From NCBI GenBank assembly GCA_053919585.1, contig CM132785.1: a stretch of 64,000 nt of DNA, one strand, 5' to 3'. Below the pieces are notes generated by a model. It searched no databases. It saw only the letters and a list, made by a program, of their open reading frames with translations, and was not told where the DNA came from. The DNA comes from Euprymna scolopes (taxonomy: Eukaryota). Position numbers and translations under genes: made by a program. Below are positions 421-63,897 of this stretch, one piece after another (within the stretch, counting starts at the first letter, position 1; each line of letters begins with the position of its first letter).

Positions 421-597
421 CTCTGTCAGGTCTGTTTAATAGGGAGTCCATATTGTCTCGAATAAATTCGATATCTGACCACAGTTCAGAATGACCAAGT
501 GACAAACATTCATCAACGCTTTGTTCTAGGGCATGACGATCGTTTTGTCTTACATTGGCCATCAGTTTTTCACGCTGTTTTTCGACATTCTTACAAC
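421..597 (-). CDS. Repeat exon, divergent Cys-type (177 nt)
   Basis: TAG|GT..G|GTTAGT; [59 protein letters not shown]. Confidence 0.85.
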
Positions 598-1008: not shown

Positions 1009-1077
<69 letters not shown>

Positions 1078-2023: not shown

Positions 2024-3886
2024 AATACGTATCCACGGACATGTGTTTCACTGTTAATAGGCTCATTATGAGATGCAACTCCCCAAGTCTCATGAGAGCT
2101 AATTTACCAGTAATAAAATTATCGCTAAAAATAACANNNNNNNNNNNNNNNNNNNNNNNNNNNNNNNNNNNNNNNNNNNNNNNNNNNNNNNNNNNNNNNN
2201 NNNNNNNNNNNNNNNNNNNNNNNNNNNNNNNNNNNNNNNNNNNNNNNNNNNNNNNNNNNNNNNNNNNNNNNNNNNNNNNNNNNNNNNNNNNNNNNNNNNN
2301 NNNNNNNNNNNNNNNTTGCAAGTTAATAAAGTCGATAAATACCAGCTCGGTATAAATGTAGTTATCAATATAGCTAGTACATATGTGGGTTGCTTGCTTT
2401 ACATTGACAATTCGGAGCTTTAGCTTTTGTGATCTCTTAAAACAACTTCGACATTTAAATAATAAGCGAAACAAGCCATATATCTAATTTTCTGCATCGA
2501 ATACTAAGTAATAAATAAATATTTATAACTTTGCTACATTTTTCCAATACAGAGTTGGATAAATTCTTATTCAAGCTCGATAAAAGAGTCTGCATTAGGC
2601 GAGAGAATCAAAAGATGAATTATTTGCAGAAACTGATCCCAAAAGACATGGGTAATAAAGCGACAGAGTTAGAAGCCGATAAAACAATACTAGCTTAAAG
2701 TGTAACTCTGATAGTTGCGAAAACGTTTAGCACTGTTCAATACTCCGATCAAACAATGTTTAAATGTGTTATTTTTATAGATCGGAAAACGCCTTCAAGC
2801 GATAGAAATCCTGCAAAATAGAAGCTATAAATTGTAAAGAATTGAAAAAGGGAGAAGTCAAGTATGTTTTCTTTAACATGAAAGACTAGTAAAAGCAAAT
2901 CTATCAAATGAGCTGCAATACTGGGGGCAATTTTCAGAAAACAAACTGACCTCCCTTTCCTCCACCTAAAGATTCCAACGTGTCCCGGGCTTCAGAAATT
3001 TGGAAATATAGTTCTGGATATCCAGCTGATTCACATTCCGTAATGACACGTTCAAGATTGACTCGACTCTTCTCTTTGATGGCTGATTGAAGAGCTTCGT
3101 AAAGAGACTCTGGAGATTGAACATCTGAACAAGACAATTGTTACGAATTTAATTCAAAATAGAGGAAAGTTACTTTTTGCAAATTATTCTTAAGCGGCGA
3201 AATTAAAGCAGATGAGATAAAGTAGACGTTTCAAAATTTGAATTATGAACTTAATAGTGTCAATATATTGCTGACTATTACTTTCAAATTAAAAGTATTT
3301 ACATAACGATTGTCAAACATTAAAAAAAATTATAAGTGTAATTATTAAAAACCATTGACAATAAGTAAAATAAAATTTATACAGGTTTTACAAGGCTTTT
3401 TCATTTTCTATAATATTTAATATATTCATTTTTAGTTGATAATTTGATCATTCAAATAAAACGGTCTTACAAACGTTGTAAGCTGAAAACTTTGTTGAAA
3501 CAGATGCATTCTTGAAAGTATTGCAAGTGTATTCCCTGAAAACTTTGTTGAAACAGATGCATGTTGCATCGTTGTTTTAATTGACAAAACAATCGAATTC
3601 AGTTATTAAGGTGGGTTCTATAATTCTTTTCTACCACTTATTTTTTTTTTTTTTTTGCAAAAGTATTTGAAGTATTTTGCTGAGCAACCTTCATTTTTAT
3701 TTATGCAAGCGGTTTTTGCTACATATGCGATACATTGTTCATCTGTAGCTTTATTATTATATGCTTACTCAACCCAATAACTTTTACATTCTAACAAGTT
3801 GGCATGAAGAAGCTTAGGTTAATAGGCTCTACCGAAAACATGTATGTATATATACATCCAAAAACATTTGTATATATCAAGCATTA

Positions 3887-3950
<64 letters not shown>

Positions 3951-6900
3951 GCGTATGTGTTTATTTGGGCGTATATATGTTTTATAAAAATATATAAATT
4001 CTTTAATAGTCTACAAAATGCACAAGATATATCAATAAAAACCAGTTGTTTATTCGTGTTTATAAATATATTGCTTGGTTCTAAACAAATATTAAAACTG
4101 TTTATGAGGTTTTATTGATTCGTTTGTTTCAAAGTAAGAGACGTTAATAAATGGTGTCTTTTTACAGTAAAAGCAGTTTTTGCAAGCAACATAATTTTTA
4201 GATAAAACGTTATTGCCAACCTCCTTGTCTTCCTTCCAGCTTATTAAGGGTTGTTCTGGCCTGTTGTATATCTGAGTCGAGATCCTTAAGGCCAGCGGAA
4301 ATGCAGGAATTTATGATTTGCCGCAGAATTCTCGGGTCTTCTCTATTAACCGCTTCTGTTAGGTGATCGCGCAGAATATCAGCTGACTTACAACCTGCAG
4401 ACGTCGTAATTCAACGGACAAAATAAAATATAACTTTCAATATTGCTATACATACAAGTATTCATTGCTATGCAATATAGACTAGTTTCTAAATTTAAAA
4501 TATTTATATATTAAATTTCTTGTCAGAATCGTTTGTGATGTTTCCTGGCGTGAAAATTTAATCTAAAAAACGATATGAAGTAGCTCAAAAACTATATATT
4601 TTTAAAGATTATGACAAGCTTGACATATTTGCATTAAAATTGATATCAAATAGAAAAAATACACCTTTAAACTTTCGTAATATTAAGTGTTATTATTTTT
4701 ATTTTTTTCTTGAGTTATATAAAACTGACATATTTCTAAGATGAACGTTAGTTACTATAAATCTGGGAAAGAATAAAACGAAAAGATGTTGTTTTAGTGA
4801 GTTACAAAAAACTGCTTTATTCTAAACAATTAAAATATTTATAAACATATTTATTTCACAGCATCTTTCATTTGCCTTACTTCTTTTGTTCTAAATAATG
4901 TTTTATACAACTTAAGATAAAATAAAAAGAATAACACTTAATATTAGGATATTTTAAAGGGGTAATTTTTTTCTATTTTATATTTTCACACTGGCATATT
5001 TCTAAGAAAGAAGAGCTCATTAGTATAAAACTTGAAACGAAGAATGAAAGGCAAATATTTTGTGGATCATATAAAATTAATTTATTCTAAATAATTAAAA
5101 TATTTATAAAAATATCTTTGCCACAACATAATTCTTTTGTTTTAAAGAAATTATTTTAATATAATTCATTGAAAGACTTTACTTTGCTTCTTTTAGTTTG
5201 GCCTCTTCTTCGTTCCAAACTTTATATCGACTATAAAAATGCCAAAATGTGTCGGCTGATTTCCTTATTTCAAAAGATGTATTTTTCCTCATATTTCATA
5301 CGTTATGCTAAATTTATTAGATGAGAAAGAAAAAATCAGTTCAATACTAAAAATAATGACAAATACAAGATACAACATATTTTTATATTCCTATCTAGTT
5401 TCCTCTACACGAGAGCAAAGTTAACTACAAAACCGGTTCTTAATGTGGAAACTCCAGCTTCCCAAAAGAGGGACATTCTGGATTGGAACAAAAAATAAAA
5501 ACTGCGTTAATCTGGATAGACTTCACATTCAGTGAATAGATAAAGTATAGCATCAGAACAAATTTTACACTTTGCTCCTAACCAAAAGGCCAAGGAAGTA
5601 TATTGCTGATGTTAGTTCACACTCCACATGTGTTACTTGTTGGATTTACTTTGTTTATTTAGATTGTTCTATCCATATTGTCTTCAGATTTTTTACTATT
5701 ATTTTTCATTAAGTGATTTTAGATATTAGATTAGCATTTTTAACTTCCTCTTTATGATTTTTATTACTCATCATGGCGCATTAGGTAAATATATAAATAT
5801 GCGCAGATATGTATCACTACATTTAATCTGCGTTTACTGTTTACAGAAATTCTGTGTAATGGGATAATTTATCCAAAAATATATGAAAATATAATGTATT
5901 ATGATATCTCTCAAGATAAGAACAATTTCTCCCGGAGAATCAAAACCTATTTATATGAAACTTATCTACTTCCATATTAAACTCGCGAACTTGAGCTTAC
6001 AACATCTGTTGTGGTATTATGTAAGACATTAAGTTTCGGAATTTTTTTTCTAGATAAGTAATTTTATTATTTATATTATTTGAACTGCTGTTCTCATATT
6101 CAATGTGATTAGTCTTATGTATATTTTGACCTTTTTAAGGTGTGTCTTGTTGAACTTAACAATCTTTATGTTGAACTCTGTACAGAATTTCCCACTGAAC
6201 ACGGGGACACACTGTTCTTATTCCTTCAGCCATAAAGATATAAATATGTGCACATGAACACGTGGCGCAACGGATAAAAGTCGTAATGAAAAACAGTTCT
6301 AAGTGACATTTATTAGTAGGTTGAAGGTTCAATCCCCATTACGGGTGATATTAACTAAAAATAAAGTAAAAATGTTTTACTAAAATAATTTGCCGAACTT
6401 GGCTGAGGAAACATGAACATAATATCCGTGTGGATTAAATAAAGTTTTCATTCTGTAATTTAGTATGGATTTCTGACTTCGACATAAAGATTAGACAAAA
6501 GGAATATAAAAATGATTGGAAGTTACATCGACCAACTAATATACGAGATGAGAACAGTAGTCTGAATAATCCAAATAATACTAAGACTGGTAGACTTTCA
6601 TTCCAAACCTGCAACTTATAACAATTCTATATGCTATCAAATATGCTATAACAATTCTGAATGGTAATCAAATATGTAACCAAATGACTTTTAAAAAACA
6701 ACAAAACGAATTTTTTCTAAAAGTGATTCATTTAGAAGCTCACTTATTGCTTTGTAATTAATATGTGAATATTTTTGAAATTTCAATTAATATTTCAATG
6801 CATGGAGATATATAGTTGTTTCTATTAATGGAGGTAAATAGAAAATATGACGATACAATGACTAAACTTGTGCGTATAAATAAAGCTGACCTTTGTCGGT

Positions 6901-9900
6901 TTCGCCCAATTCTTTAATAACTTCTCGTGCCTCGCGTACATCATTCCCTATTTCGGGATACTCAGAAACTTCACATTCGTAGATGCACTTGTTCAGATCC
7001 TCTGCGTTCTTTGTGTCTATAGCTTTTCTAATTTGTTCACGAAGGTTCAATGAAGATTTATAAACCATGTCGATATCTAGATTGTCAATCAATAAAAAGG
7101 AAGGAAATAACAAAATATGTTAATTCTATGAGAAATCAAAGCTTACACTTTTTAATTCGATAGTAATATAATGATGAGTCAGCCAATAGAATGTCAATTT
7201 TTTATATTTTAAAAAGAATACACAAATTTCAATCAACAATCTGAGCCTTTTCCCCGTGCCATTATGGTGTATAGTGTTTTGTGTTTTTGTTTCATTTCCT
7301 CATAACAAACATAATTCAAGAATATCTTTCAATTTTTTGGTCGTTCTGCAAGTGCTATAATCTTTTTTCTTGATGGTTACATTTAAATAAACATAGCATG
7401 GCTTATTTTAAAATGCCATATATTTTAAAATTCCAAAATGTAATTTCAAAAAGATTCATCTGACAGTCCAATGAATTGTATACATGATTCGACATATAAA
7501 TAATTCTCTCGGCCCAGAACATATCTATATATAATAATAACATCTAATCATCAATATGGAAACAAATAGACGAATAACGTGCATAATGCATCCCCTAATG
7601 ACTAAATAAAAGTAAAACTAAATCTTTGGTCATAAGTCCAAACTTCTATGTTTCTTACAGTGCTTCCTACATTAACTTTACTTTCTTTTTATATTAATGT
7701 CTTTTTTTACTGGTTTCAACTTGTCTGACTTGCGTATATAGACTTTATAGTAAGACTTCAAAATAAGAACAGGTGCTACCAGATTAGGAAGATACCTTCC
7801 TGGCATAAAATGAATCATTGCTTTTTTTCTTTTTTTTTTGCACAACTCAATCATGTTCTGCAAAGCCCAAAACAAAAAGAACAATCCCCTCTACAAAACA
7901 TGCAAAACAAATACCATAAATAAATATTTGAAGATATAAAAATGATTATATTTTGCTTTAAATAACCCGAAAATGATTTATATGCCGTAAAAATTAACAA
8001 CTAAATAAAACCAAACAAAACAAGAATCTTATAAAGCAATAAAACAGTTTGATATAAGTTTTTATAACATATACGATAACTTTTATTGTACGTGATTTAA
8101 TTGAGTTATAAAATATATTAATTTTACTTTTATAAAATTCATAATGATTTGATAATTAATTAAGACTTGATTATCACAAGATACTTCAGCGTATGCCAGC
8201 AAGTATTATGACTAAGAAAAAAGTAAGAGAATGTAGATATTTGGCTTATTTTAACTTGTTTATCTGTTGGGTGCGCGGTGCCAAATCTTAACGTCATACA
8301 TTTCAGTCAGAATTCCTTGAATACGATATACAGTCTCATATTTTACTGAGAACTGGTAATGTAATTACCGAATCATGTTGCCTAATTAAGAGTCGAGGCA
8401 TTTATTTTGAATTCAACGTGGGCTTGTATCAACTTCTCCAAGTTCGACTGTTTTTAAGTGTGCTTTATGGCACACTTAAAACAGTTCGACTGTTTGTAAG
8501 TGTTCTTTATAGCACACTTACAAACAGGTCGACTGCTTTCAAGTGTGATTTATAGCACACTTAACATAAATACAGGTACTTTGTTGGAAAAGAAACTGTT
8601 ATTGAATATTCTTCCTATTTATATGAGTGCAAATAAACATACTATTAATTATTAGAGAGCAAACTATAGTACCTTGCTTTTACTAAGAGAACATTTTGTA
8701 ATATTGTTACGAATGATGTAAGTAGTCATAGAAACGTTCGTTTCTGTTCATATTCAATAAGGTTATAAGTCTAAGGTTTTTAAATTGGTGTTATAATTAT
8801 ATAAAGTGCTTACAGTAATATAAATAAAACATTTTTGATGAATAAACGTAAAAATTATGATAATACATACATCAACAGAACAAGTTAAAAAAGTTCCGTA
8901 TGAATACCATTTCATATTACAAATTATAAAAGCAGAATCACAGCTTAAAAAACAGAATTATCGAAAGGTGTATTTACCTTCTCAATAGATTTCTAAGATT
9001 ACCGAGGAAGATATAAACGGAGAAACAGGTTTTGTATCAACTTCCCGAGTAAAACGTTGACGAAAGAACCTATCATTGATATGATTCTACTCCACCCTTC
9101 CTTGCGAACTGCGCCAATAAAATCTATGGTTGGTTGCGATGTATAACAGATAGTGAGATAATATCTCGTATCATGTTAGTTTGGCTGCGTCTTACCCATA
9201 AAATAAGGAATGGCGGCACGTAATAAAAATTGGCGTTGAAATCGTTAATTATATACGAAATAACTTTCCGTCGTATCAGTGCAAATATAGCGAGTAAAAA
9301 AGGCGTTTATATATGTACAGTTGTTTTGTATTTTTCTTTATACTGGATATATAACTGAATTGCGTAAATAGTTTTTTATATTATAAGATAATATTATAAG
9401 ATGAATACAGCGCGATTATTGGCACTCAATGTAACTAGTATATCTGTTATATGAGAGTTATAATATTAATATTATACATTTTTAGGAAGACTTTTTCCAT
9501 TATAGAGTAGATGCGTGAACGCATTTCGGTCAGTCTTCTTACATTTTGTACATATAAATATATGGAAAAAAATAAAGATATAAATATGCGGTTTATTTAT
9601 GGATAAAGATATATAGATTATGTTTTAAGATTTGGGTAACTTACATGTAAAAGTAGACGTATGTAAATATGTGTATATACATACATTTTGTATGTACATA
9701 TTTATATATTTGTATATTTCTACTGTTTTCATGTTTATATATATATGTGTGTGTGTATGTGTGTGTGTGCGTATTATAAATATATTATAAATTTATGTAT
9801 GTATATAAATATAAATGCTTCATACATAATTACCATAGTAGATTAAATATTTATAGTAAATTATATTTAATATGTGTGTATACCTATATAATTCTTAACA

Positions 9901-14400: not shown

Positions 14401-16956
14401 TCTACATCTGGTTAAACATGTTGATGTTTCAACATTGTTACTTTCAAACCATGTGTTTTCTTTTCGCTTTGATGCACTACCATAAAAGGTCATATAAAAT
14501 TATAACCTTTCAAATATGAATACACACAAAAATGTTTGGAATAGTTCCGTTATTCCTGGAATGTTACCAAGATATGTGTAAATATTCGTACCATAGTTAA
14601 AACTTTCAAGATACATCGTCTATGCATCCATGATCGTTTTAAAAGTTGGTTAACTGCAGCGATTAAACTGTATCGCTTGACCATTAATAGAAATTCTCCA
14701 GATAATTAATTATTTAGAGCTGAAATAAAATGAGTGGCTGGATGCTATGAACATGTACTGAAATAAATAGCATTTAAACAACAAAGTTTACAGCTGAAAT
14801 AAAAATATTGCATCAACAATTCTTAAGTCTATACAAAATCAAACATTTAAATAATTATAATCTGAAATTAAACTAACACCTGAAATGAAGAATCCTGTGG
14901 ATAAAACGTGCAGTATATTTTAGATTATCTCCCATATTGACAATTGTCAAATGGGAAATAGTTAGTCAAACAAGTATAACATGCAAATATTTCATGCAAA
15001 AGTTGTTATTCGTCGTCTTTCTTTTTTACTTCTATCTGAAAAAGTATTGCATTTTTTTTTTTTGCTGAAAATTAAAAACATTTATAATACGATAAAAATA
15101 ATTTACAATATTTTTAATTATCATGCCATGCGTTTTTTTTTTTTTTTCATTTTCAATTTTTTCATACCTTTTTTTTTTTTCATTTTTTTTAAATTAAAAT
15201 TCATTTTAATTTGTAAGTGCAATTAATCTATCATGCATGATATGGCGAGCTGAAAAAGAGTTTATTTTTTCAATATTTTTTTTCATTTTTAATTATTTCT
15301 ATTCTTTTTTTATTTTATTTTTTTCGTTTTCTTTTTTTTCATTTTCTTTTTTTCATTTTCTTTTTTTTTTTTCAGACTAGAATGAATATGTACAGCGCAA
15401 GAGAATGCCGCTATACCTGTTTACCTATCTAATCTAAATAGAAGAAAAAATATGATAACGCTAAGAGAGTACTTACCGCCGCGGCCTCCTCCCAGTTTAT
15501 CAAGAGAATCCTTCGCTTTGCGCAGGTCGTAAGCGAGTTCCGGTAAACCGGCGTGTTCCGCCTCTTCAATTGCGCGTTGTAACGCTGCTTTATCGTTTTG
15601 CTTAATAGCAGTCTTCAGTTGGTCGCGTAAGACATCAGAAGATTTATCAACTGAAACAGGAAGGGAAACAATAACATTAATACTTATAGATTGGTTAATC
15701 AAGATAGAAATACCAAAAAAGCTACCAGATTGGTCACGTGTTTGATTGATACTTTACCCTGCCATACGAAGCCGCGCGTTTACTTTCCTTGTCGATGATG
15801 AGAAATGTTTTTAAAAAATGCTCTAAGGTGATTTCACTCACTTAGAGAAAATCCTTTATCGCGTCTATTGGTGCAGACTGGTGTAATTTCGAAGTATTCC
15901 TTCTCTTAAATTAATTACCGTGCCAGGTATATTCTATTATTTAGCCCATAACTGGAGGAGGATGATAGATTATTGCATACCTTCCTCCAAAAATTATAAC
16001 GTCATTAATTAAAATAGAGAGATGGGTTATAATTTTATAAAATAATGACGTCATCTATCAAACGACAAAGGGAATCAGAGGTGAAATATAACCGTCATGG
16101 TGTTTTATCTGAGTGACCCTAATGATCACGCGTCCTGTACCAGAAATATTGTCTACACCTTTGGCGATAAATAGTTTTGTTGAGTATGACGCAGAACTTA
16201 ATATAGCGACACATTCGGATCCGCTGTCTGCGTCACTTCTTCAACAATTATAGAATACTACTAAATTACTATTGCTCTTTATATCATGTTTGTCACCGTG
16301 CACACGGAACGACAAAATCATTTTGTGATGTCATCCATTAAAGCAGTTCCCTCAACAAATACGTGAATCTAGTCTACCATACTATTGTACCCATAACTGG
16401 AAAGAGGATAAAGTGTTTAATACCTTTCCTTTAAAAATAGTCACGTCATCGATTAAAATAGACCGATGAGTGATAATCATGCGTAGTTGATGACGTCACA
16501 AAATCCATCAAACCACAGAAATAGTGATGTGGAAAATATCCTTTATAACGTTTTATCTGGCTGACGCTAAAAATCACGGGTTGTCTATTAGAAAAACTGT
16601 CTATACCACTGGGAGATATATTGTTTCATACCTTTCCCAAAAATATTAGTGAAGATTTTACGAAACTACAAAAAGGGTACGTCGCAGTCGAGCATAGTAC
16701 TATAACCCTGTGGGTCTTTATATTTTGTTTGTCACCGTGCACACTAGACAAAAACATTGTTTTCTATTGCCAGACATTAAAGCAGATTGATAAGAATAAC
16801 GATGCACATTGTATAATGCAGTGATAACGTCATCCATTAATATTGAGAGATTGGCGATAAGCGTGCACAGTGTATGACGTCAAATAATAAAGCATCACTT
16901 CTCGTCTACTAGAAGAGCCATATAGACACATGGGGTGTAGTATATTATTAAGACTG

Positions 16957-17683: not shown

Positions 17684-19855
17684 TTTGCAGGAAACAAAAT
17701 GTCAGTAAACTGGCCGACAAAACATTTGAAAAGTATAGTTGGAATTGTCCGGTAAGGACATCTCAGGCGATTAGAATACACTACTCCCTTTTCAAAAAGA
17801 AGATAAAGTCTAGGATATGTTTTTACTTTATGTTATGTGAAGAGAAAATTATATTAAAAACAAAGAAATTATGGCACTAATTTCAAGAAAAGGGGTGTTA
17901 TCTTCCTACCTCCATTTTCGTCGTGTCTGCCATCCAGAATCTCCTTTGAACATTGGACATCGGCGTCCAATTCTGTCACACCCATAGCTATGCATTCACT
18001 AATAGCGCTTTCGATAGCATCAATGTCGGCACGTCTTATGAAATCTCTCAGGTTGGCGCGCAGAGCACTAGTTTACAAAATCAAACAAATTGTATCATTG
18101 CCGTCGGGTTTATAGGCACGGTGGACAACATGCACTTCGTTCAATCCAGAGATATGCGATTCTGTCAATCAGATTTTCGCCATTAGTACGAAAACCCGGG
18201 TATGTTAAGATGCAAGGGAAAATATACAATTCCTTTGGCAGAACTCTTTACCCATGAAAAACAGTGCATGGATAATTCGACAAGTCAAAAATAATATTTG
18301 CAGGTTAAACATTCCTGCCAAATTTATACATATAATAACTACATTACTTTATTTCATTTTGAAATCATGTGATATTTACGTATGGCCCAAATAACTTATA
18401 ATGTTTAACCTTCTCTCCTGAGCACTATCTCTGTCTAATAATTCTTATCTAACAGTGACAATGTAAGTAGAGGTGTTAGAATATAGATTTTGTTAAGTGA
18501 CGACATTTGTAAATGTGTTAGAGAGAAAGACATAAGAGGTTAGTGTCGGGATGTATCCAGAAGAAGAGGGAATAAAAAGAAAAGGTGCGAAATCGGAACA
18601 AATGAATAGAGGTAGATAGGACACTGAGTGAAGACGTGTGTGTCATTGTCACTGTTCGTTCATTATTATTAGACCGATTTGTGAGAAGGAAGAATATAGA
18701 CACGTAAGTATTATAAGTTATATGGGCATTTCGTTACTAAGAAAATTATTATTTATGCCAGATAGATTGGACATATTTCCATAAATGTAATCTTTACCTG
18801 AAACTACGAATACAGTAGAACTCGGGGATACGGTGGCTCTAGGATACGTTTTTTTCAGGTTACGATGTGGAATAGGATGTTTTTCGGGTCCTTGGTTACG
18901 GTATTTGCCCCGCCTTAATGTGTTATTTATAATGTTAATGTGTATTATATACTGTATTTTGTTACTGATTTTAATGCCGTATCCCGGTGTTCCACTATAT
19001 TGTAAAACTTTTTGTAGTACTTAAAATTAATATCGATTGGAATTACGAGATATATTTTATACAAAGATAATTTAAATNNNNNNNNNNNNNNNNNNNNNNN
19101 NNNNNNNNNNNNNNNNNNNNNNNNNNNNNNNNNNNNNNNNNNNNNNNNNNNNNNNNNNNNNNNNNNNNNNNNNNNNNNNNNNNNNNNNNNNNNNNNNNNN
19201 NNNNNNNNNNNNNNAAGTTAGATTCGAACATTATCAAAGATGAGTATATTTACAATAGATGAAAGGGAAATGAGAGAGGAAGCCTCTTTAAGTCATGACA
19301 ATTCAAAACTAAATGCTTCTCATCAGAAAGGGAGAAATAAGGGGTTCCCTCTGGCTTCATTTTCCTTTCACTTATTATAATTACTCTCATCCTTATTGAC
19401 ATAATAATGTAATGAAGTGCGAATGTAATTTTAATTCTCTCTCTTTATCTTTTATTATGAACTGTTTCTCTTACTCGGGAAGAGTTTCATCTATGCAGAC
19501 ACGTTGTCCCTTTCTCCCCGAANNNNNNNNNNNNNNNNNNNNNNNNNNNNNNNNNNNNNNNNNNNNNNNNNNNNNNNNNNNNNNNNNNNNNNNNNNNNNN
19601 NNNNNNNNNNNNNNNNNNNNNNNNNNNNNNNNNNNNNNNNNNNNNNNNNNNNNNNNNNNNNNNNNNNNNNNNNNNNNNNNNNNNNNNNNNNNNNNNNNNN
19701 NNNNNNNNNATATTAAGAACATGAACTCAAAACCAATATTTTTTCAAAGGTGAGTATAGTTTTTTATAAATAAAATTAAATAAACATTAGGAAGAGTCTA
19801 CGCGAACCGACAAACGTTTCGAATTGAAGTCAACACGAGATTCTGTCCAAATGTA

Positions 19856-44560: not shown

Positions 44561-44612
<52 letters not shown>

Positions 44613-45156: not shown

Positions 45157-45208
<52 letters not shown>

Positions 45209-48200
45209 AATCACAGGCAGACAGGAAAATATATTTTACGTATTTGTGATCGAATAATAGACTTATGAAAGAAAGTTACGGTGGCTAAATGGTTAAAATA
45301 AACTGACAACTTGGGTGTGACATGTTCAAGTCCATCTCGTTCAACAGAAACACTTCCACTTATGTTGGAAACCATATGTAGTGCCTCCATAAGTACCCGA
45401 TGTCCTTCTAGAAGGAATTTTAACAAGAAAGATGTCGGGAAAACGATTTAATGACTAAAATAATCATCAGATTTATTTGAAATCGATGAATGAGTGATGG
45501 CCAACAATAAAAACAACAAAATAAACTAATGCAAAATTTAAGAAGAATAGAGAATGATGTGTGGTTAGGGAAGCATACGGACGGAATTAGAAGAGGAAAG
45601 AGAAAGAGCGGCATGTGTCTATGGGAGATAGATATTTATGTTAGAAATATAGCTAACATATATGAACAGTTTTATTTTTATATTAAATATGTATAATTAT
45701 TTAAAAAGCAAAATTTACTAAACTACAAACTAGAATAAAATTCTTGGTTACATGCAAAGGAAAATAAAATAAATTATCTACATTCAATGCTAACCTCCTC
45801 GTCCCCCTCCTAGTTTATCCAAGGTATCCCTGGCTTTCCGTAGTTTGGAGCCTAATTCTGGGTAACCAGCGGCTTCGGCGGCCTCAATAGCTTTCTCCAA
45901 TTTATCTATGTCTTTCGATCTAATAGCGTCAGTCAGTTCATCGTGAAGTTCCTCCTGGGACATGATATCTAATAAGCGTAACAAATATATTAAAAAAAAG
46001 TTTTTACTATATATTCACGATTAATTTTAAATCTGTAATCTATAAATAAATTATAAAAAGAAACTTAATAGAATAACAGTTTTGACAAAAACGTTATTTA
46101 ATTAAATCATCCGCATAATACTAGTTACAAAATTAAGAATATTAACAAAACAATACGTTTAATAATCTGCATCATGTTTCTTCATTGTTATTATTTTTAC
46201 AGATATGCAAGAAACAGGTTAATAATCAAGTTATAATCGTGTTTATACTAGAAATACTAAAACAAGTTTCCATATTCTTTAATTGGTTAGGAATAATTCC
46301 ATTACAAAAATAGTAGTAGCAAACCTCCTTCGCCTCCTCCTAAAATGTGAGAAACTTTTCTGGCTTTTTGTAATGTGTCATCAAGTCCTGGCAATCCTGA
46401 TGCGACACATTCTCTGATTGCTTTGTCCAGAGCGCGTTTGTCTTTTCTTTTTATTGCATCTTTGAGTTTCTTAGCCAACGCCTCGGGAGATTTAGTCCCT
46501 GATAACAAAACAAGGCAACACATCAGACCTCTGAATCTCTTATAGATACTTTGTTTAAGCGCTAAGATTTTCTACTTTTACTTATTCAAAATATCACACG
46601 TGTGATTAGTGTGCTTTAAAGTTTAATGAGTATTGAAATAATAAATATATAATATTCAATATGCGATGATTAATTACAAATATATACAACTTTAACAAAA
46701 ATAAAAGTTTTAGAATCCGCAACGAACATATACAATGATTACTTGAAAGTAATGTTCTCCTTACTGAAATCTCAATTTCTCTTAGCTCAACTCATCCTTT
46801 TTACCTATTTAAATATTTCCTCAGAAGTTAGTTACAGTGGAAAGTGCTATAATTACAGATATATGGTCGATCATGGAACCACATAGTATAATATCTGTTT
46901 TAACAAGTGGGTTTATTTCAGAATAAATACGTTGAATCATCACCGGATTCTCAAATTTGTTTAGCAAAATATTACCACGTATGTATAAGTAGACATAAAT
47001 GAATTATATATCTAAGGCAAACAATCATTAGAATTCTTTAAAATACTTTGAATCACATACTCTATATTCTAGCAAATAGACAAATAAAACAGTAAATATA
47101 TAATATTGAATGTTATGCATACAGCGTGAATGATTGGTTTCGTCCTGGCAAACGTTTTAATTTTGTAAAAGATCAAGGCAACTAATTTTCTGACGAGGAC
47201 TACTATAAAGAAAACAGTTAAAATCAAGAAGAGGATCTACAGACTACAAAACGCAAAACGCACATCTAAACATGCAGTAATCGGCTAACCTCCTCGTCCG
47301 CCTCCAAGTGACTCTAAAGATTTTCTTGCTTCACGAAGGTCAGAACCAAGTTCCGGATATCCGGCAGTTTCAGCCTCATCAATTAATCTTTCAAGATCTT
47401 CCTTGTCTTTAGACCTTGAAGCTCTCCTCATTTGGTCACGTAGTGTATCCGGTGACAAAGAACGAGATCCTGGTTCATCCCAAGAATAATAGTATAAGAT
47501 ACGTGCAAAAGCCAGACATTTAAAAATAGATGCAATATTATAAAATAAAATCTAAATAAATCGACACAAAATATGAGTTATAACAAATAAATATATTGAT
47601 TCAACTATGTACTTAATTTGATATAAATCTCGCAATTACTACTATAGTTAAAGTAGTTTAAAGATTATTATCTGACAGTTTTCCCAAAACATTCTTTCCT
47701 TAAACTTATTTTGAGAGAAAACAGTATTGTATGACCTCTGTTGAGAATCAAAATATAATCTTATGTCAGTAACATCTCATAATGCTATATAATGCTAGGT
47801 CAGTAACATATGCCAATAGCATATGTATGTAACATCTAAATAGCTGATACTGCATCACTAAAACGTTTTTATATTTCCAATTTTGCTTGAGTTAAGCACT
47901 AAATTAAAAATGCAACAAAATTCCTTATGAAATATTATATTATAAATAAACCTGCTAATAACTACATATACAATTTCTTTTCAAAAACTGTGTATTCACT
48001 ACTTGTCAATTTTTAAAAAACACATTACAATATTAATCTCCGAAATTATTTTTAAAATGGTTTATTAAATATTCATCTATATGTTAAAATAATGAATGAA
48101 CACAGAAATCATTTGATTATATCTAACCTCTGCGAGTCTGTTCGCACAGTTTTTCTCTTTCGTCAAGAGATTTTCTGGCTCTGCGAATATCGCCGTCCAG

Positions 48201-49684
48201 TTCTGGCATGCCAGCCGCAACGCATTCGTCAAGAACAGCTTCTAGAGTGTCTTTGTCTCCTTTTCTCATTGCGTCCCTCAGTTTGCTCTTCAAGACGTCG
48301 GGGGTTTTACTTCCTATAGAGACAAATACTGAGCATCGTAGAAAAGTTGTTTGTTACGTTCGATACTGAAGCATCATTCACCTTAGGACAAACAATTCAC
48401 ACGTGTTCATTAGCGTCGTATTGGTGTTCGATCAATATAGTTAATGTTACCACAACTATAGAAGACAAACGCCGTTTAATACTGATAAAAAATTTATAAA
48501 GTAAAATTAATGTCGTGTTGAATAAGCTGTTTAGTATGATTAAAAGCTTCATTAGAAGTAGTTACTGAGCATAGTTTAATCAATTTATATGATGGTTCTT
48601 ACGAAATGTGAGAGAAAAAATAATTAGTTCCATTTCATTAGATAATGGTCAGTAAAAGATAAAATATTGGCAATTTTAAAATTATTATCAATAGGGAAAA
48701 ACTATATTTCAAATATATAATAAAGCAATAGACTTGAAAACTGCGCGCATTAAAAACTTCATCATTAAAAATAAATCAATAATCAGATAACCAAATCGTT
48801 ATTTAAACTAACTACTACGGTTTATAAAACCATGCAGGGTCTAGTACACATCTATCTAAATGCAGGCTAACCTCTTCGTCCTCCGGCAAGTTTATCCAAA
48901 GTGTCTCTTGCTTTACGCATTTTTGAGGCTAGCTCAGGATATCCAGCTTCTTCGGCGTCTTCAATCGCTTTCTCCAATTTATCGATATCTTTAGATTTTA
49001 TGGCTTCATTTAAATCATCATATATTTTGTCAGCAGATGGAATTTCTAAATGAAGATAATAAGTCCACATTTAAAACACATATTTCAATAGTAAATAGTC
49101 TACGATATTTACTAATATCTTCATAACCAGTCATATATGTGTTAGTATTACTTCACGATACAGTTCAATATTGAATATAAAAACAGTGAACACTTTACAA
49201 ATAAGATATCCATTTTACATGAAATTAGCTGCATGCAATGAAAAGTTCTCAAACGGAATTTTAAAGTAGGCTTGGTGAAGAATTTTATCCGTTTCACAAA
49301 TAGTGAAATTATAAATATATCGAGAATGGTTTTGCAGTAATTTTATAATATAATTAGTGAATATAAATACATCAAATCAGTTATACATTTTAAATTCAGG
49401 TGTAAAAGATTCACGATTTTACACTTTAAGGAAATCTCGAACATATAGCATCGTTAACGGACAAATGGATATTTACATAAGGTAACCATAAAATCATGAC
49501 ATTATGTGTTATAAAATGTTCCAAAGGAATACATATATATTATTTTATTCAATTTAGGAAAATAAAATAACAATTGCATTTTGACTACTTAAATTGAATA
49601 AGATAATATCTTGCTCTTTTTCTTCAGTACTATCAACAACCTCGTTAAATTTGATATTTTTAACTTTTGGTATATTTTAAGCTG

Positions 49685-49732
<48 letters not shown>

Positions 49733-52046
49733 TTGATTAATTGAAGTACATATGCATTTTAAAATTGATATGAATTTTAATTTTAGATATGTAGTGTTTA
49801 TATATCGCTGATGCATGTTGTTTTTAATTGACATATGTTAGAAATTACATAATTGGTTACACAATTCAGTTGTTTAATCTAATGGTATCTATTTTACGAA
49901 AATTTTATAGGTTAAAAATATGCCAGATCTAACCTCCTTTTCCTCCTGAAAGAATATCTGAAAACTTCCTGGCTTTGTGTACAGCGTCGTCTAATTCTGG
50001 CAAGCCTGACGCGACACATTCTTTGATTGCTCTATCGAGAGCACGTTTGTCTTTTCTTCGGATAGCATCTTCGAGTTTTTTAATCAAAGCATCGGGAGAT
50101 TTAGTTCCTGGGTGCCAAAACAAGAATAAAGAACAATGACTTCATCTCAAACATAAACACAATTAAGTCTAATGTGAATTGTGAAATGCTGATACAAGAA
50201 TAATAGTTCCATATAACATGAATAAGGAATAATTGTAATTTTCAAGAAATCGAAATTCTCTAATCTACAATTGAGAATAAACCACACATCTAGACATGCA
50301 GGAAAAAGCTAACCTCCTCGTCCACCTCCAAGACTTTCTAATGATTTTCTTGCTTCACGAAGATCAGAACCAAGTTCCGGATATCCGGCTTCCTCGGCCT
50401 CATCAATTATTATTTGAAGACCTTCTTTGTCTTTAGGTCTTGAAGCTCTTCTAATTTGATCACGTAATGTATCAGGTGACAAAGACCGAGAACCTACGAA
50501 TCATAATAAATAAATATACTAGAAATAACATTACTAAGTGACAACAGGTAGTCGAATCAAATATAATAATACTAAAAAAAACTATATACAAAAACGTGTA
50601 TATGCATAATGTACGATTGATAAGATAATTATATAAGATTGTAGAGATTAGAGATAGAGCGAGGGAGAATTTATAAGTTGAAATTCCGATCAAAATTAAT
50701 GTAATTGATATAATTAAATATATTTAAATGAACTTATCTTTATCTGAGAGGGTGTAATAATAATGTAATGCCTACGCATATTAAAGCAACTGTGTAAGGG
50801 ATATAGTCGTTAATCTCATAAAAGCTATACATTCATTTATATCCATAATTATTAATTTTATTTGAACAATCACAGAACGTTATAGTAATATATGTCAGTA
50901 GTGTACCTGTACTATACCAGTAGTATAAAACCAGTAGCCGCAGTATAAAAGTAAAAATACAATTACATCGAACGTAAGTACCCTTTTTAAAATGATTGCT
51001 TACAAAGAGGTAGTAAGACAGGTGAAACAGACTTTCTAAAATATCCCTCTCGTATAAAAGGTTAGATAATCAAGAGTGCATTTAGAAAACAAAAAGGAGT
51101 ATCATAAACAGATTTATAATAGTTCATTGTTATTATTATAAGCAATTATGTCAGCATTATGCCTAACCTCTTCGTTGGGGTTCATCGAGATTTTCTTGAT
51201 CCTCAAGAGACTTTCTTGCTCTGTTGATATCTGCGTCAAGTTCTGGCATACCAGCCGCGACGCACTCATCAAGTACAGCTTCGAGAGTGTCCTTGTCACC
51301 TGTTCTCATTGCTTCTCTCAGTTTGTCCTTCAAAACATCGGGTGTTTTACTTCCTGGGAACGGAGATTACATACTTCGTCAGAATTAAAAACAAAAACTA
51401 ATAGCCGCGGTTTAAGAACGGCATGCCATCCAGGCGCATGCGTACAACTTATTAGCTTTGTGAAGATTTATAAACCCCCTTCTACTTGAGGAGTTAACTA
51501 CAATAAACTAGTAAAGTACAATCTCGGTACTGCTTGATATTTTGTTGTAATATAATAATGAAACGTTGTGTGTTCCATACATTTGTTTCTGACCGTAGAA
51601 AAGCTAAAAATGTAAGAGTTTACATTAATGGGTTCATTTTATTTCTAAAATAGTCTGATAGATGTTATAAGTTAATTAATTTTCAGTTAATAGTATTTTG
51701 ATTGTGATAGTTTATTTTAAATTCTGTGATGAGTAACTAAACTAGTTTTCAATGAACAACCGCTTATTATATAAAATTAAACCTATTCAGAACTCTTATT
51801 TACAAGTAATTATAAGATAACGTTAAAAGTGTAAGGTTTTTATAATCTGAAATATCAAGTAAAACTTAGTTAATGTTAGGTTTATGAACCAAATGTTATG
51901 ATAAAAATATGTACTTCAGTTCTTAGTAACTATTGCTACAACTAATTAAAAAGCAGAATAAGAGGGAATATACCGATGAGTTAATAGAATGATATATTTC
52001 CGTTCGTTTTTAAACAGAGCATTCGACAAGCATATGTAAGCTGTTT

Positions 52047-52117: not shown

Positions 52118-53311
52118 TATATTGCAGTGATAAAAAGCTTATACTGTGGAGAAAAACGACCCGGTTTCAATTTCAGTTTGAAGCAATAGCATGGCTAATC
52201 ATACTGAAGCCTTGTAAGATTGCTAAAACTAATATATGTATTAAAGTAAGACACTGAAATCTCTACTTCAGTAAAACAGATAAAAAGTTAAGCTTATAAA
52301 ATAAATTGCACGGATAATTTTTTAGAGTAATTTTCTTACAAAACAAACAATTATTAAATAAATGCTCAGCGTAACAAATAGAAATAAACAATCGCATCAA
52401 AGTATATAAAATATGCGGAAATGCACTACAGACTAAAAGTTAACATCATGCCAAAACTAAGAAAAATCTTCACTAGATTCCAACCTCTTCGTCCTCCTCC
52501 GAGTTTTTCCAATGTGTCTCTTGCTTTACGCAGCCGAGAACCTAATTCTGGATACCCAGCTTCTTCAGCGTCTTCAATGGCTTTAGCCAATTTGTCAATA
52601 TCTTTAGATTTTATGGCGTCGGTCAGTTCATCATATATTTCGTCAGCAGAAGGTACATCTAAGGGGAAATAATTTTTGTATTTAGACGTTTTATATTTAT
52701 TTGCAGATTATCAAACTATTTTCACTTAATCACGAGAAATGTATAGCATTTATTTCTCTTTTTTTTTCTAAAGGTTTAAAAATTGACCTTCAAAATTTCT
52801 CAAAGTATTTAATCAGTTTAATATACTTTGAGAGGGTATTATCGTCTTATTTTAGATGTTCAGGTGCATTTTACTATAGTTAACAATGACAGTTCGTTTT
52901 TTACATATATGCACGATCTGTGTATGTAAGTTTATTGCTAGTACAAACAGTGTTACGAGATTTAAGAAAACCTGTAACATACTCTCCACTACATTTTAGA
53001 TAATAGTGGCATTTGAGTACATCTATGCAGAAGGTGATACATAACCCCTCAAAAACAAAATTATTCAAAATTAATATATATGAGAATTAGCCGAGGTTAA
53101 CAATACTTCGAATTAAAGTAACATGTAACACAACAGATTATGAATTGGAATTAACCAATATCCATTAAATTATGTGTTCTTACAACGCCGATAAGTATAA
53201 AAAATACTGCGATTGAAATTATGTAAGTATGTACTTTAGTAATAAATATAAATGAATTTAAGGAAATTTTGTTTGTATTTTATTTCAAAATATAATTAGT
53301 TCTCTGATAGA

Positions 53312-53381: not shown

Positions 53382-54408
53382 TGACAAACATTATATCAGA
53401 TTCGAACCTCTGCGTCCCCCTCCGAGGTTTCCAGTGTGTCTCGTGCTTTACGCAGCNNNNNNNNNNNNNNNNNNNNNNNNNNNNNNNNNNNNNNNNNNNN
53501 NNNNNNNNNNNNNNNNNNNNNNNNNNNNNNNNNNNNNNNNNNNNNNNNNNNNNNNNNNNNNNNNNNNNNNNNNNNNNNNNNNNNATATAATAAATGAGTA
53601 ATGCTTTCTTACAATGAAATCAGTATGCATAATGGCTAAGTTATGATTAAATCTAACCTCCTTTTCCTCCTGAAAGAATATCTGAAAACTTCCTGGCTTT
53701 GTGTACAGCGTCGTCTAATTCTGGTAAGCCTGACGCAACACATTCTTTGATTGCTCTATCGAGAGCACGTTTGTCTTTTCTTCGGATAGCATCTTCGAGT
53801 TTTTTAATCAAAGCATCGGGAGATTTAGTTCCTGGGTGCCAAAACAAGAATAATGAACAATGACTTCATCTCAAACATAAACACAATTGAGTTTAATGTG
53901 AATTGTGAAATGCTGATACAAGAATAATAGTTCCATATAACATGAATCAGGAATAATTGTAATTTTCAAGAAATCGAAATTCTCTAATCTACAATTGAGA
54001 ATAAACCACACATCTAGACATGCAGGAAAAAGCTAACCTCCTCGTCCACCTCCAAAACTTTCTAATGATTTTCTTGCTTCACGAAGATCAGAACCAAGTT
54101 CCGGATATCCGGCTTCCTCGGCCTCATCAATTAATGTTTGTAGAGCTTCTTTGTCTTTAGCTTTTGAGGCTCTTCTAATTTGATCACGTAATGTGTCAGG
54201 TGACAAAGAACGAGAACCTACGAGTCATAAAAAATAAATATACTTACAGTTACAATAAATAAATAAACATATTGAAACAGAACAATAAAGGTACTAAAGA
54301 GGGCAGCAGCTTGTTTTTTTAATATAATAATTCTAAACAATAAGGTATAACTCATGCTTAAAAAGAGAATTCTATAATATCATTTAATGTGATAGATAAG
54401 TTCTTAAA

Positions 54409-54708: not shown

Positions 54709-56250
54709 CTCCACATTTCAGAGCATCACGTTGGTGAGAGAAAATTATTCCAAATTATCATTTACGTATAGTTTCTTCCGTTCTAATGTATTGGAGGAAA
54801 AATAAGCTTATAAATGAGTATTACAATGATCTTGATAAATAAATAATCATTAAACCGAATGTATTATTAAGTCGAATTTTTTGTTTATGTACATAATTTG
54901 CGTCATTATTAGACAATCAAAACATGACATCGTAATATTTATTTTTATAACCTTTGAATTTAAATAATTTAATTGTTGTCTGATCCAGCAGACTCAAATG
55001 CAATTGTAGCAAAGTAATTCGTTTTACAGTGACTCCCGTATACAGAATGCTCAACGATGGTTCGGCGGTTTATGACATTGACTGGGAGCCTGGACGTGCT
55101 AGGTCCTACTCCAGTTCGTGCTACAGAAACACTTGTATCAAATCCACACCTGACCTTGTGCCTAACCTCCTAGAGAGGATTTAAATAAATACATAAGATA
55201 ATAAAACAATAGGGTCATATCACTTTCATTCGAATAGTTATAATATTCAGAATTTATACTAAATTGAAAAAATATGATAAAATACAGAAAACTGTGATTA
55301 ACAAATTGTAAATAATATACCATTAAAACTTAAGGTGTACTATTATTATTCCTAACCTCTTCGTTGTTTTTCATCCAGTCGTTTCTGGTCATCAAGAGAC
55401 TTCCTTGCGCTGTTGATATCAGCGTCCAGTTCTGGCATACCAGCCGCGATGCACTCATCAAGTACAGTTTCGAGAGCATCCTGGTCTCCTGCTCTCATGG
55501 CTTCTCTCAATTTATCCTTCAGAACATCGGGAGTTTTACTTCCTGACAACGGAGATGACATACTTCATCAGAAACGAAAAAGCCACGAGCCGTGGGTTTA
55601 GAGCGACGTGCAACCAAGGCGCATGCGTATATGAAGTACTGAGTGATCAGCTTTTGGCAGTGAGTCAGACTAGCATTTGTTTCTGGGAATGAATTGAAGT
55701 AACACGTGTTGATCTAATTTAATAGATTCTATTATTTTCGAAATAATTTCAATTCAAAACACATTCTTTCTTTCTATAATCCGTAACTAAATTGTCTCTA
55801 GCAAAAACAGCTGCGTTTTTTATTATCAAAAATAATATTTCAGATTAATCATCAAATATGGGTAAAATAGTTCGTATCTCATCATCTGAAATCTTTAGTA
55901 AAATAATTAGATGTTTGGCTTTCTTTGCGAAGCATCAAAATGGAATTATATAGTTGAATCTATATCAGTAGAAATTAGAAGTGAACATCACTGATACTGA
56001 TGTATCGTCTGCAAACTAATATAAAAAGCAATAATATCAATCGCATTTATTATTCTTTAAAATACTACTTTAAAAATCTAATATTATATTTGCATTTGAC
56101 ATAAATAGGGATTATTTCCCTACTCGTCGTGTAATGGTTGTAATTGGTGAGAATGCTCAAAATTGAATTAAAGATGACTCCTACACCGGAGATCTTAAAG
56201 GTGAGATTGATTTGAACATCATCACACTGAAGGTTTCGCAAGGATAGAAC

Positions 56251-56315: not shown

Positions 56316-59300
56316 TAATAATTAAATATGTATCATTAAGAAATAATATATTTGTGTGTCTTTCTTTGTATTTGTATTTTCACGGTTTTGTATTTTACAA
56401 ACAAGCCGCTTACACATAGCAATTTACGCACGGACACACACATACCCATAAAGTTTGCCCAAAATAATCATAAATAAAAAATAATGCAACTATTTTGAAG
56501 GTCTACAAAAGTTATTTCCATGAGAATTTCCTAGAAATAAGTAAAATACAACAGTTTTCTTTATTTACGTCCTTTATAAAAGGTTATAAGCACATGGGAA
56601 ACTTAACAGCAAAATATATATCATTCTTATACAAATATTGCTATTCTGTAGGTATAAAACTGTATGAAGCTCAAACAAGTATTTTAATCTTACTATTTTG
56701 TTTATAAAAATGTATAATGTTATTTTAAGGAGAGATATACACACCAAAATCCATAACTGGGTTCAGATAATTTTAAAAAAACGTTAAAATTTTAACCTTG
56801 GGTTTACAAGAATGTCAAACCAGATTTTTATTATTTGCAGTGAATAGGAAAAGAGTTTTAGAATACTTATACTATTAGTTTTAAAGTATGATTTACTTAC
56901 AAAAAGCAATTATGAAATAAAATTTCAGCGTAAAAATGGAATCTAAAAACAAAAGAAAAAACTATTCTACAGACTAATAGGAAACGCCATGCAAACATTA
57001 TATCAGATTCGAACCTCTGCGTCCCCCTCCGAGTTTTTCCAATGTATCTCGTGCTTTACGCAGCCGGGAACCTAACTCTGGATATCCAGCTTCTTCAGCG
57101 TCTTCAATAGCTTTCGCCAATTTGTCAATATCTTTAGATTTAATAGCGTCGGTCAGTTCGTCATATATTTCGTCAGCAGAAGGTACATCTAAAAGAAGGT
57201 AATTTCATTATTAAGATAAATTTCAGTTCAATAAGTTCATTTATTTTAATAAAATATAATACTCGCTTCTTTAAAACCAAATTGATAATATTTATATTGC
57301 TTGTGTGTTCAAATTTCGATAACATAAGTTTCTAATTTGTCAGTGTTCGGTATATTTTAAGGGCTACAAATACTTTTTAATATGGCGTAAATCTTAATTT
57401 ACATTGATATTGTTTCATGTGTATTTAGCAATACGTTATTATGTTAGTTATTTATTTACATATGTACCTGATCTATATATTTCAAATGTATAGTTTGAAA
57501 AGCTTATAATCCCGCTGGCATCGTTGTTTTAACAGTTAGTTCAAATAGACTTTACATTATAGCTACAGACAGGATTAATAAGAAAAACTGCTTTCAAAAT
57601 GTCCCGTTTTACGAAAATGGACATACAAACATAAGAAACTGTTTGAGGTATTAATACCAAAAGTTAAGCTAACATGCTAAACAAGTGGCTATAAGCAACC
57701 CTAATAAATATGCATTGGCTTATATTAAACTTACAAATATAAATACAAATACTTCATAATAGTTCTTTATGAATAAATATAGCTTAACTAAAAGTATATT
57801 TACTGTTGTTTATTGTTTTAATTATTGTATATGTTATCTTATTAAATATAATCGATTAAAACTTGCTTCGTATTGAAATAGAAAATTTATGTAACAAGTT
57901 AAATATGATTGTGTCTAACCTCCTTTCCTTCCTGACAGAATATCTGAATACTCCCTGGCTTTTTGTACAGCGTCGTCTAATTCTGGCAAGCCTGACGCAA
58001 CACATTCTTTGATTGCTCTATCTAAAGCACGCTTGTCTTTCCTTCGGATAGCATCTTCGAGTTTTTTAATCAAAGCATCAGGAGATTTAGTTCCTGAGAA
58101 CCAAAACAAAATCAAAGAATAATGATTTCAGCAAAACCCTAGTAAATTATAGAATGCTCGTATTAGAACATTTCTCATTAAATCCGAATAAAGAAAAAAT
58201 GTAATTTCCAGAAATCGAAATATAAAATATATTGTTATAAGTAAACCACACATCTAGACATGCAGAAAAGGCTAACCTCCTCGTCCGCCTCCAAGATTTT
58301 CTAATGATTTTCTTGCTTCGCAAAGATCAGGGCCAAGTTCCGGGTATTCGGAAGCTTCGGCTTCATCAATTAATCTTTCAAGACCAGTTTTGTCTTTTGA
58401 TCTTGAAGCTCTTCTCATTTGGTCACGAAGCGTGTCAGGTGACAGTGAACGAGAACCTATCAGTCAAANNNNNNNNNNNNNNNNNNNNNNNNNNNNNNNN
58501 NNNNNNNNNNNNNNNNNNNNNNNNNNNNNNNNNNNNNNNNNNNNNNNNNNNNNNNNNNNNNNNNNNNNNNNNNNNNNNNNNNNNNNNNNNNNNNNNNNNN
58601 NNNNNNNNNNNNNNNNNNNNNNNNNNNNNNNNNNNAGAAAATTATGTATTTTTATTTTGAGCTCGAATTTCTACGAGAAATAAATAAAGAGCACCACGCT
58701 CTTGACTCGTCACACAATCTCCCAAGCAAACCAAAAGTACTTGGGTCCACAATGACCATATTAAATTCATTGAGCAGTTCAAGCCAGAAATATAAACACA
58801 TATCAAGCAAATTGAAATGATCACAAAAGAATTAAGAATTTCAAATATTAAAATTCGTGCACTGATTACTCTTTAGAGTGACAATTAGAATAGGAATGTT
58901 GAATTTTAATTGTAATATAATATAAATCTACTTCAAGGAATTTGTTACCAGGCAATTCAATGAATATGATAACAATAAGGTGTCAAACCTTTTCGTTGAC
59001 GTTCGTCCAGTTTTTCTTGATCATCAAGAGATTTTCTGGCTCTGTGAATATCAGCGTCCAGTTCTGGCATGCCAGAAGCGATGCATTCATCAAGAACAGA
59101 TTCTAGAGCATCACTGTCTCCCTGTCTCATTGCTTGCCTCAGTTTTTCTTTCAAGACATCTGGAGTTTTACATCCTGACAACGGAGACGTCAGACATTGT
59201 CGTGAACATAATTGAGTCAATGGCTCAGAGCAGCGTGCAATGAAAGCGCATGCGGACTAAACAAAAAGGGAACACTTTTGTATGTATTTTTCCTACGAAT

Positions 59301-63897: not shown

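Follow-up and report, generated by a model that had tools for sequence, protein, structure and literature searches.

An array of 37 frame-compatible single-module exons in Euprymna scolopes, spliced one after another for the most part and probably belonging to a giant KY-like gene

The stretch of 64,000 nucleotides analysed here, referred to below as the window, is taken from contig CM132785.1 of the Euprymna scolopes assembly GCA_053919585.1 and is AT-rich (26-33% GC). A profile built from nine minus-strand open reading frames of the window that carry a recurring motif of about 58 residues has been run on both strands. It has 40 repeat matches with E below 1, all of them on the minus strand, while the plus strand gives E values of 0.57 or worse. 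For 37 of the 40 matches we have identified phase 1 splice sites on both sides, namely a GT donor and an AG acceptor preceded by a pyrimidine-rich tract. These intact exons lie on the minus strand between 421 and 63897, are 171-186 nt long and are all multiples of 3 in length (174 nt in 21 exons, 186 nt in seven, 180 nt in five, 177 nt in two, and 183 nt and 171 nt in one each); together they encode 2188 residues. Exon numbers run from 1 to 40, and 12, 26 and 35 are absent from the list of intact exons. A first-pass annotation made from the letters alone had proposed 37 homologous phase 1-1 exons over 421-63897, and the same count and range are reached by the profile and the splice sites.

The exons fall into four classes, referred to as K, S, T and V, which follow each other in the fixed order K-S-T-V eight times (exons 1 to 34) and are succeeded by five divergent and widely spaced exons (36 to 40). 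The K exons are exons 1 (63712-63897, phase 1-1), 5 (58989-59174), 9 (55357-55542), 14 (51168-51353), 18 (48128-48313) and 22 (44171-44356), each of 186 nt, together with exon 27 (36868-37050, 183 nt) and exon 31 (27873-28049, 177 nt). The S class comprises exons 6 (58277-58456), 10 (54038-54217), 15 (50314-50493), 19 (47290-47469) and 23 (42696-42875) of 180 nt and exons 2 (62902-63075), 28 (34567-34740) and 32 (26670-26843) of 174 nt. All eight T exons have 174 nt, namely exons 3 (61926-62099), 7 (57920-58093), 11 (53658-53831), 16 (49934-50107), 20 (46325-46498), 24 (41425-41598), 29 (33559-33732) and 33 (25380-25553). The V exons 4 (61071-61244), 8 (57015-57188), 13 (52485-52658), 17 (48872-49045), 21 (45795-45968), 25 (40037-40210) and 30 (32278-32451) are likewise of 174 nt, and for exon 34 (24589-24762) two acceptors are available, both in phase 1, of which that at 24762 gives 174 nt and that at 24759 gives 171 nt. 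The divergent exons are exon 36 (15477-15650, 174 nt), which is closest to V and S, exon 37 (6891-7076, 186 nt), the T-like exon 38 (4221-4394, 174 nt), the V-like exon 39 (2951-3124, 174 nt) and the K-like exon 40 (421-597, 177 nt).

The array has the architecture known from titin and nebulin, with one module per exon and symmetric phase 1-1 in 37 of 37 exons. The final base of every exon is G, so that any junction forms a GNN codon and never a stop; the proposal that any subset of the exons can be joined in frame is thus upheld. The phase 1-1 symmetry does not count as evidence of alternative splicing, since tandem exon duplication requires such symmetry anyway. The usual donor G/GTTAG following a phase 1 exon reads GGT-TAG if the intron is retained, as in the donor at 44165-44170 on the minus strand, and this in-frame stop accounts for open frames that end at the exon ends. 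We have considered the in-frame TAG at +3 to +5 of these donors as a cause of the T at +3; this is possible, but selection for it would be weak, as a stop is soon reached in an AT-rich intron in any case. On the plus strand, open frames of 75-91 codons are also found opposite K-class exons (44159-44407, 48092-48319, 58980-59243 and 63658-63933). Their recurrence is explained by the paralogy of the exons, and these antisense frames over K exons have no sign of being genes.

Three further copies of the repeat are damaged and stand outside the 37, all on the minus strand. The fragment at 53417-53455 belongs to the V class, is cut by the assembly gap 53457-53584, runs out of frame at its end and is frameshifted after 'DTLE' relative to exon 8; the intact V exon 13 comes next. 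This broken V copy ahead of an intact V, at the gap, is the only place where the K-S-T-V order is disturbed. The fragment is a duplicate that has been damaged or else reflects low sequence quality where a contig ends; the gap, which is probably longer than estimated, could conceivably hide extra exons. A large assembly duplication has been rejected as the source of the V-V irregularity at 52.5-53.5 kb, as the 97% identity is confined to a 594-nt S-T block. The second damaged copy (37675-37773) is a degenerate S-like relic without usable splice sites. The third (17908-18066) is K-like, and its only good acceptor is in phase 2, so that its inclusion would break the frame; use of a cryptic phase-1 AG located 22 nt deeper in the copy would yield an exon of 135 nt that keeps the frame.

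The window contains 12 runs of N and none of them lies inside the 37 exons, 11 being intronic or flanking and one (53457-53584) cutting the extra V fragment. Each exon has its own splice sites, and the reading frames are therefore independent of continuity across the gaps. Exon 5 sits on a 785-bp piece between the gaps 58469-58635 and 59421-59572, the former of which stops 12 nt short of the acceptor of exon 6. RNA contigs join exons 4 to 5 and 5 to 6, and the order and orientation across these two gaps are hence right. The remaining gaps have no RNA contig bridging them, yet the K-S-T-V order is continuous across them apart from 53457-53584.

Sequence identity is 71% within a class and 40% between classes. 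In the maximum-likelihood tree the S and T exons form single groups and the K and V exons nearly so, and the class labels need 6 changes as against 22.6 when shuffled. The ordered four-exon period noted previously is accordingly well founded. Older copies (exons 27 to 34) branch first in each class, which indicates block duplication of the whole four-exon unit. Comparisons within classes give a dN/dS of about 0.14 at a median dS above 1, and the proteins encoded by exons 8 and 13 are the same in spite of a dS of 0.37. The exons of the array are coding and under purifying selection. The array would thus have grown by repeated tandem duplication of the K-S-T-V unit, with the copies kept by purifying selection.

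A pair of S-T blocks, each with a short intron (183-206 nt) between the two exons, is 97% identical (49927-50520 and 53651-54244). A third such block (57904-58466) is 81-82% identical to this pair, and the flanks have diverged. Judged from the sequence comparison, this suggests recent local duplication or gene conversion confined to the S-T block.

Evidence on splicing has been drawn from assembled RNA contigs of public runs belonging to four studies; such contigs drop rare forms and carry no counts. The public RNA runs contain 13-21% of the words of a 6-kb stretch, in agreement with an exon share of about 21% calculated for it. Twelve predicted introns have been confirmed to the base. Six of them, in the region 44100-50100, are found at the exact predicted bases in contigs of runs X10 and X12 and are all of GT..AG type on the minus strand, and six further ones in the region 57900-63900 are exact in contigs of X10, X11, X12 and X19. 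In the latter region the junction of exon 1 to exon 2, both junctions of exons 2 and 3 and that of exon 6 with exon 7 are exact. In X12 a 1654-nt contig contains about ten exons in unbroken succession, from 16 to 25, and their order is the same in X10. The letters of the junction of exon 15 with exon 16 and the junction of exon 16 with exon 17 are found in RNA, exons 17 to 22 are represented in RNA contigs, 182 contig letters lie between exons 22 and 24, where exon 23 is expected, and 30 contig letters match exon 24 exactly. An RNA contig also extends upstream of exon 1 and past the edge of the window. Runs X5 and X6 hold unspliced fragments only and add nothing on splicing.

Spliced RNA of the array is therefore present in several studies, and a lack of spliced transcription, which had been named as one of two outcomes that would overturn the earlier reading, does not apply. 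In the main mRNA the exons of the window are spliced one after another. About ten consecutive exons on a single contig mean that the main mRNA includes most exons, and they exclude a system in which one exon is picked from the array. Among the 12 donors examined, 11 have only the neighbouring exon as partner.

The one exception is the donor of exon 4, which all the alternative junctions found have in common and which joins exon 5, 6 or 9, keeping the frame in each of the three forms. The junction to exon 5 is found in run X10. The junction to exon 6, in which K exon 5 is skipped, is seen in X10 (32 letters of exon 4 ahead of exon 6), in X19 (147 letters of exon 4 and then 22 of exon 6) and in X12 (exon 4 and then 12 letters of exon 6), and the letters that flank it occur nowhere in the window outside exons 4 and 6. 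The junction to exon 9, in which exons 5 to 8 and hence one whole K-S-T-V unit are skipped, is seen in run X11 only, where 27 letters agree with exon 9 throughout, with exon 14 except at 2 positions and with exon 5 except at 5. X10 contains both the 4-to-5 and the 4-to-6 junction, and X12 both 5-to-6 and 4-to-6. A single-base difference from the window is present in exon 4 in X11 and in exon 6 in X10. A search of a protein collection with exons 4 and 6 for open reading frames that span the junction has returned only single-exon frames of at most 89% identity. The 4-to-6 and 4-to-9 junctions, seen in contigs beside 4-to-5, may represent length isoforms, with deletion haplotypes as another possible source. 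Limited in-frame cassette skipping at the donor of exon 4, as real exon skipping, is nevertheless the likelier account. The earlier preference for cassette skipping over a pick-one choice agrees both with the consecutive exons on one contig and with the three in-frame partners of this donor.

The donors of the array deviate from the canonical form in a uniform way. Position +3 is T in 31 of the 37 exons, C in 5 and A in 1; the usual form is GTTAG, and the sole canonical donor (GCG/GTAAGT) is that of exon 36. The uniformly weak donors of the first-pass annotation are hence confirmed, with a pyrimidine at +3 in 36 of 37. The donor of exon 5 (AAG/GTTTGA) has a 5/9 match and is among the five poorest. 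In Octopus bimaculoides an A at +3 is found in three exons of the KY-domain region and in the first module exon, a comparison of four sites in addition to exon 36, and the pyrimidine at +3 is on this ground a property of the array in the window. It has been kept in exon copies that are otherwise saturated at silent sites.

The introns carry class-specific motifs of the type bound by RBFOX proteins. In an unbiased count TGCATG is the top enriched hexamer at +7 to +60, with 12 sites as against 20 in 53.6 kb of other intron sequence, which is about 17-fold. It is found downstream of five of the eight S exons (+13 in exons 2, 10, 15 and 19 and +12 in exon 6), of six of the eight V exons (+35 in exons 4 and 17, +21 in exon 8, +38 in exon 21, +29 in exon 25 and +37 in exon 30), of one of the eight K exons (exon 27, at +43) and of none of the eight T exons. 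Upstream, GCATG lies at -73 to -102 in seven of the eight K exons, mostly as CGCAUG rather than UGCAUG. Examples are CGCATGC at -84 of exon 9 and -76 of exon 22, CGCATGG at -79 of exon 31, GCATG at -88 and -73 of exon 14, and TGCATG at -102 and -86 of exon 27. The upstream motif is part of a conserved intronic block, ACGCATGCGC..GCACG, which lies about 80 nt upstream of seven of the eight K exons, for instance ahead of exon 5 at 59233-59263 on the minus strand. A consensus RNA fold of this block upstream of the K exons has given no structure. Intron identity around the motifs is 57-60%, as compared with 54-58% for shuffled sequence; the introns being no more alike than shuffled sequence, the motifs must have been kept by selection. 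The chance of finding a motif in six or seven of eight exons is of the order of 1e-9, a rough figure derived from background frequencies. A second conserved word, TAGATGTG, follows TGCATG behind six of the eight S exons, for instance at 62867-62901 on the minus strand, and behind exon 17, and it may form part of a composite intronic element.

The element (U)GCAUG is the binding site of RBFOX proteins and tends to enhance an exon from downstream and to repress it from upstream. As in RBFOX-regulated cassette exons, the motif in the window lies within about 100 nt of the exon, is conserved amid a randomised intron, and is placed behind the exons of two classes and ahead of those of a third. Unlike in those exons, the upstream element of the window is mostly CGCAUG and is placed inside a longer conserved block. 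Class-specific elements, as proposed before, are thus recovered, in the form of TGCATG behind S and V exons and GCATG ahead of K exons, and the RBFOX role is an interpretation of their sequence. The upstream motif characterises the class of K exon 5, which is the exon skipped on its own. Taken together, the pyrimidine kept at +3 of the donors and the conserved GCAUG elements, which differ between classes, point to an exon recognition that relies on RBFOX-type enhancers and silencers in the introns, and control of this type would allow regulated skipping. A splicing code of the super-repeat, with activating GCAUG behind the S and V exons, repressing GCAUG ahead of the K exons and weak donors, through which an RBFOX-type factor could trim single modules or whole units, is put forward as a tentative proposal that we consider possible but not likely. 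Were it true, it would tune the length of a titin-sized KY-like protein by tissue.

Each exon encodes one module of about 58 residues together with a Gly-rich (GGGRGG) or charged linker, with the frame split in a G/NN codon. A single module has been modelled by AlphaFold as three helices with a pLDDT of 83. A stretch of four modules of the Octopus vulgaris protein is modelled as separate bundles with low-confidence linkers (pTM 0.28), and the chain of modules is accordingly of beads-on-a-string type in the predicted models. Pfam scans of five exon open reading frames have nothing above threshold, a Foldseek search against the PDB and Swiss-Prot models has no match with E below 1, and only unnamed protist clusters are found in the ESM Atlas. 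No homology to Ig, FN3 or nebulin repeats has been detected in the Pfam, PDB sequence and fold searches. The search of PDB sequences with the profile finds de novo designed helical proteins only; these have been set aside as a reflection of the idealised helical sequence and not of homology.

A profile search of 1.8 billion proteins has 267 matches, mostly single-exon open reading frames, and the named ones are Octopus proteins. Residues 787-842 of one of them (P0116) are matched by the profile of the 37 exons with E = 5.9e-13. P0116 and a second Octopus protein, P0157, comprise a transglutaminase-like core (PF01841), three Ig-like_KY stretches (PF23265) and a charged coiled region, followed by the modules. 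P0157 has about 16 modules of the same four classes, and the exons of the window are 55-69% identical to the class-matched modules. In O. bimaculoides (CM046607.1) a distance of 8.7 kb separates the KY exons from the first module exon, which lies downstream of them, and further on there is a 5242-residue model. A nucleotide comparison of the window with the two O. bimaculoides loci has no match, and within the window only module exons and no KY domain have been found. Arrays of a shorter helical repeat are also present in proteins of dinoflagellates, Rhodelphis and other protists (P0007, P0008, P0084, P0110, P0144 and P0145), with a pattern similar to the module, 'L..A....D...L..AI.EAEAAGL'. 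These profile matches are not claimed as homologues, the shared feature being a shorter and generic helical motif.

The occurrence of the same module behind the KY domains of Octopus KY-like proteins makes a very long KY-like cytoskeletal tail the most likely product of the array. On the minus strand the window would cover an inner part, towards the 5' end, of a single giant protein-coding gene, whose product is most likely a beads-on-a-string tail of a KY-like cytoskeletal protein; both the link to a KY N-terminus and the function are inferred from sequence. At the donor of exon 4 the in-frame alternatives would drop one K exon or a whole K-S-T-V unit. We regard it as probable that the window is part of such a giant KY-like modular gene, with exons spliced mostly consecutively and some in-frame skipping at exon 4.

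Three other accounts of how the exons are used have been weighed against this one. Regulated combinatorial splicing, with numerous cassettes used in tissue-dependent combinations under an RBFOX-type code and a product that varies widely in length and composition, is in our opinion rather unlikely. It gains from the freedom to join any subset of exons in frame without a stop, from the suboptimal +3 position of 36 of the 37 donors, from conserved and class-specific GCAUG elements at positions that enhance or repress exons in other animals, and from the three partners of exon 4. The contigs in the 57.9-63.9 kb region are short and end at exon ends, as branching of the assembly graph would produce, and an RBFOX homologue has been reported in the transcriptome of O. 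vulgaris (PMC5736919). About ten consecutive exons on one contig, with the same order in a second run, and the neighbour-only partners of 11 of the 12 donors argue against it, and the symmetric phase is a by-product of exon duplication. Of the regulated combinatorial array as first proposed, the transcription of the exons, their splicing as predicted, their in-frame interchangeability and one donor with three partners have therefore stood, while the general combinatorial system has not, since about ten exons are consecutive on a contig and so are all the other junctions. An array of the Dscam1 kind, in which the mRNA receives a single exon of the cluster, would have tandem, homologous and frame-compatible exons just as the window does, but neighbouring exons are joined at 12 RNA junctions and about ten share one contig; it is refuted and retains a negligible probability. 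Purely constitutive splicing is doubtful as an explanation though of some weight. It would attribute the 4-to-6 and 4-to-9 junctions to haplotypes that lack exon 5 or exons 5 to 8, or to near-identical units outside the window. Such haplotypes are consistent with the two gaps that enclose the 785-bp piece bearing exon 5, a situation to be expected at a heterozygous indel; the 4-to-9 contig and one 4-to-6 contig are each one base off the window, and tandem arrays with blocks of 81-97% identity are prone to unequal exchange. Units outside the window are plausible inasmuch as the gene continues past its edge. Two different deletion alleles at the same donor, common across four studies, would however be needed, whereas X10 carries 4-to-5 together with 4-to-6 and X12 carries 5-to-6 together with 4-to-6. 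On either side of the junctions the letters occur nowhere else in the window than in exons 4, 6 and 9, and in the 4-to-9 contig the portion from exon 4 is not a hybrid of the V exons 4 and 8. Introns of the same class are no more alike than shuffled sequence, which makes homologous exchange between them unlikely.

A further view, that the array is a non-functional relic such as decaying pseudogenes, a satellite or the remains of a mobile element, could draw on the three damaged copies and on a module without a Pfam family. It is refuted by the dN/dS of about 0.14 at dS above 1, by intact splice sites in 37 of 37 exons and by the spliced RNA, and can hardly be entertained.

Within the KY/hillarin family the resemblance lies in the Octopus KY-like proteins, which have the same module after their KY domains; to our knowledge the vertebrate KY protein has a few hundred residues and no such array of modules. 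Titin and nebulin genes are known for symmetric module exons, block-duplicated super-repeats and a protein length that is altered by in-frame skipping. The array in the window shares with them one module per symmetric exon, super-repeats duplicated as blocks, a very long product and in-frame skipping that would change its length. It differs in that the module is not an Ig, FN3, PEVK or 35-residue nebulin repeat and the family is KY-like, in that skipping is found at one donor only, and in that the candidate regulator is a GCAUG-binding factor and not RBM20. The exon clusters of Dscam1 are similar as tandem, homologous and frame-compatible exons, but the exons of the window are used consecutively and not one per cluster. 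The rods of spectrin and dystrophin are also long proteins built from tandem three-helix units; the units of the window are about half as long, are joined by flexible Gly-rich linkers and have no fixed packing (pTM 0.28 in the model), and no sequence or fold match has been found.

In the literature searched no published description of the gene or of an array of hundreds of such modules has been found. The new elements of the present analysis are the validation by RNA, the analysis of donors and motifs, the alternative junctions and the four-exon region. If the reading is true, cephalopods have a protein of the titin size class that is built of an unnamed three-helix module on a KY-type head. 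The RNA-proven exons, the map of motifs, the weak donors and the first in-frame skip would then serve as a test case for very long repeat genes outside vertebrates and insects. Current octopus gene models are fragmentary ('uncharacterized protein', 'kyphoscoliosis peptidase-like, partial'), and the exon coordinates given here could help to repair them.

Two elements of a different kind have been identified on the plus strand within the introns. A tRNA-like sequence at 31983-32063, in the intron between exons 30 and 31, is assigned by ARAGORN to tRNA-Cys with the anticodon ACA and has a score of 44.8 bits with the Rfam tRNA model; a tRNA gene and the head of a SINE are both possible identities. 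In intron 4, at about 60630-60704, a short element with a tRNA-type B box (GTTCGAATCC) has a word depth in the RNA contigs of three runs that is far above that of the neighbouring exons, and it is probably an abundant SINE.
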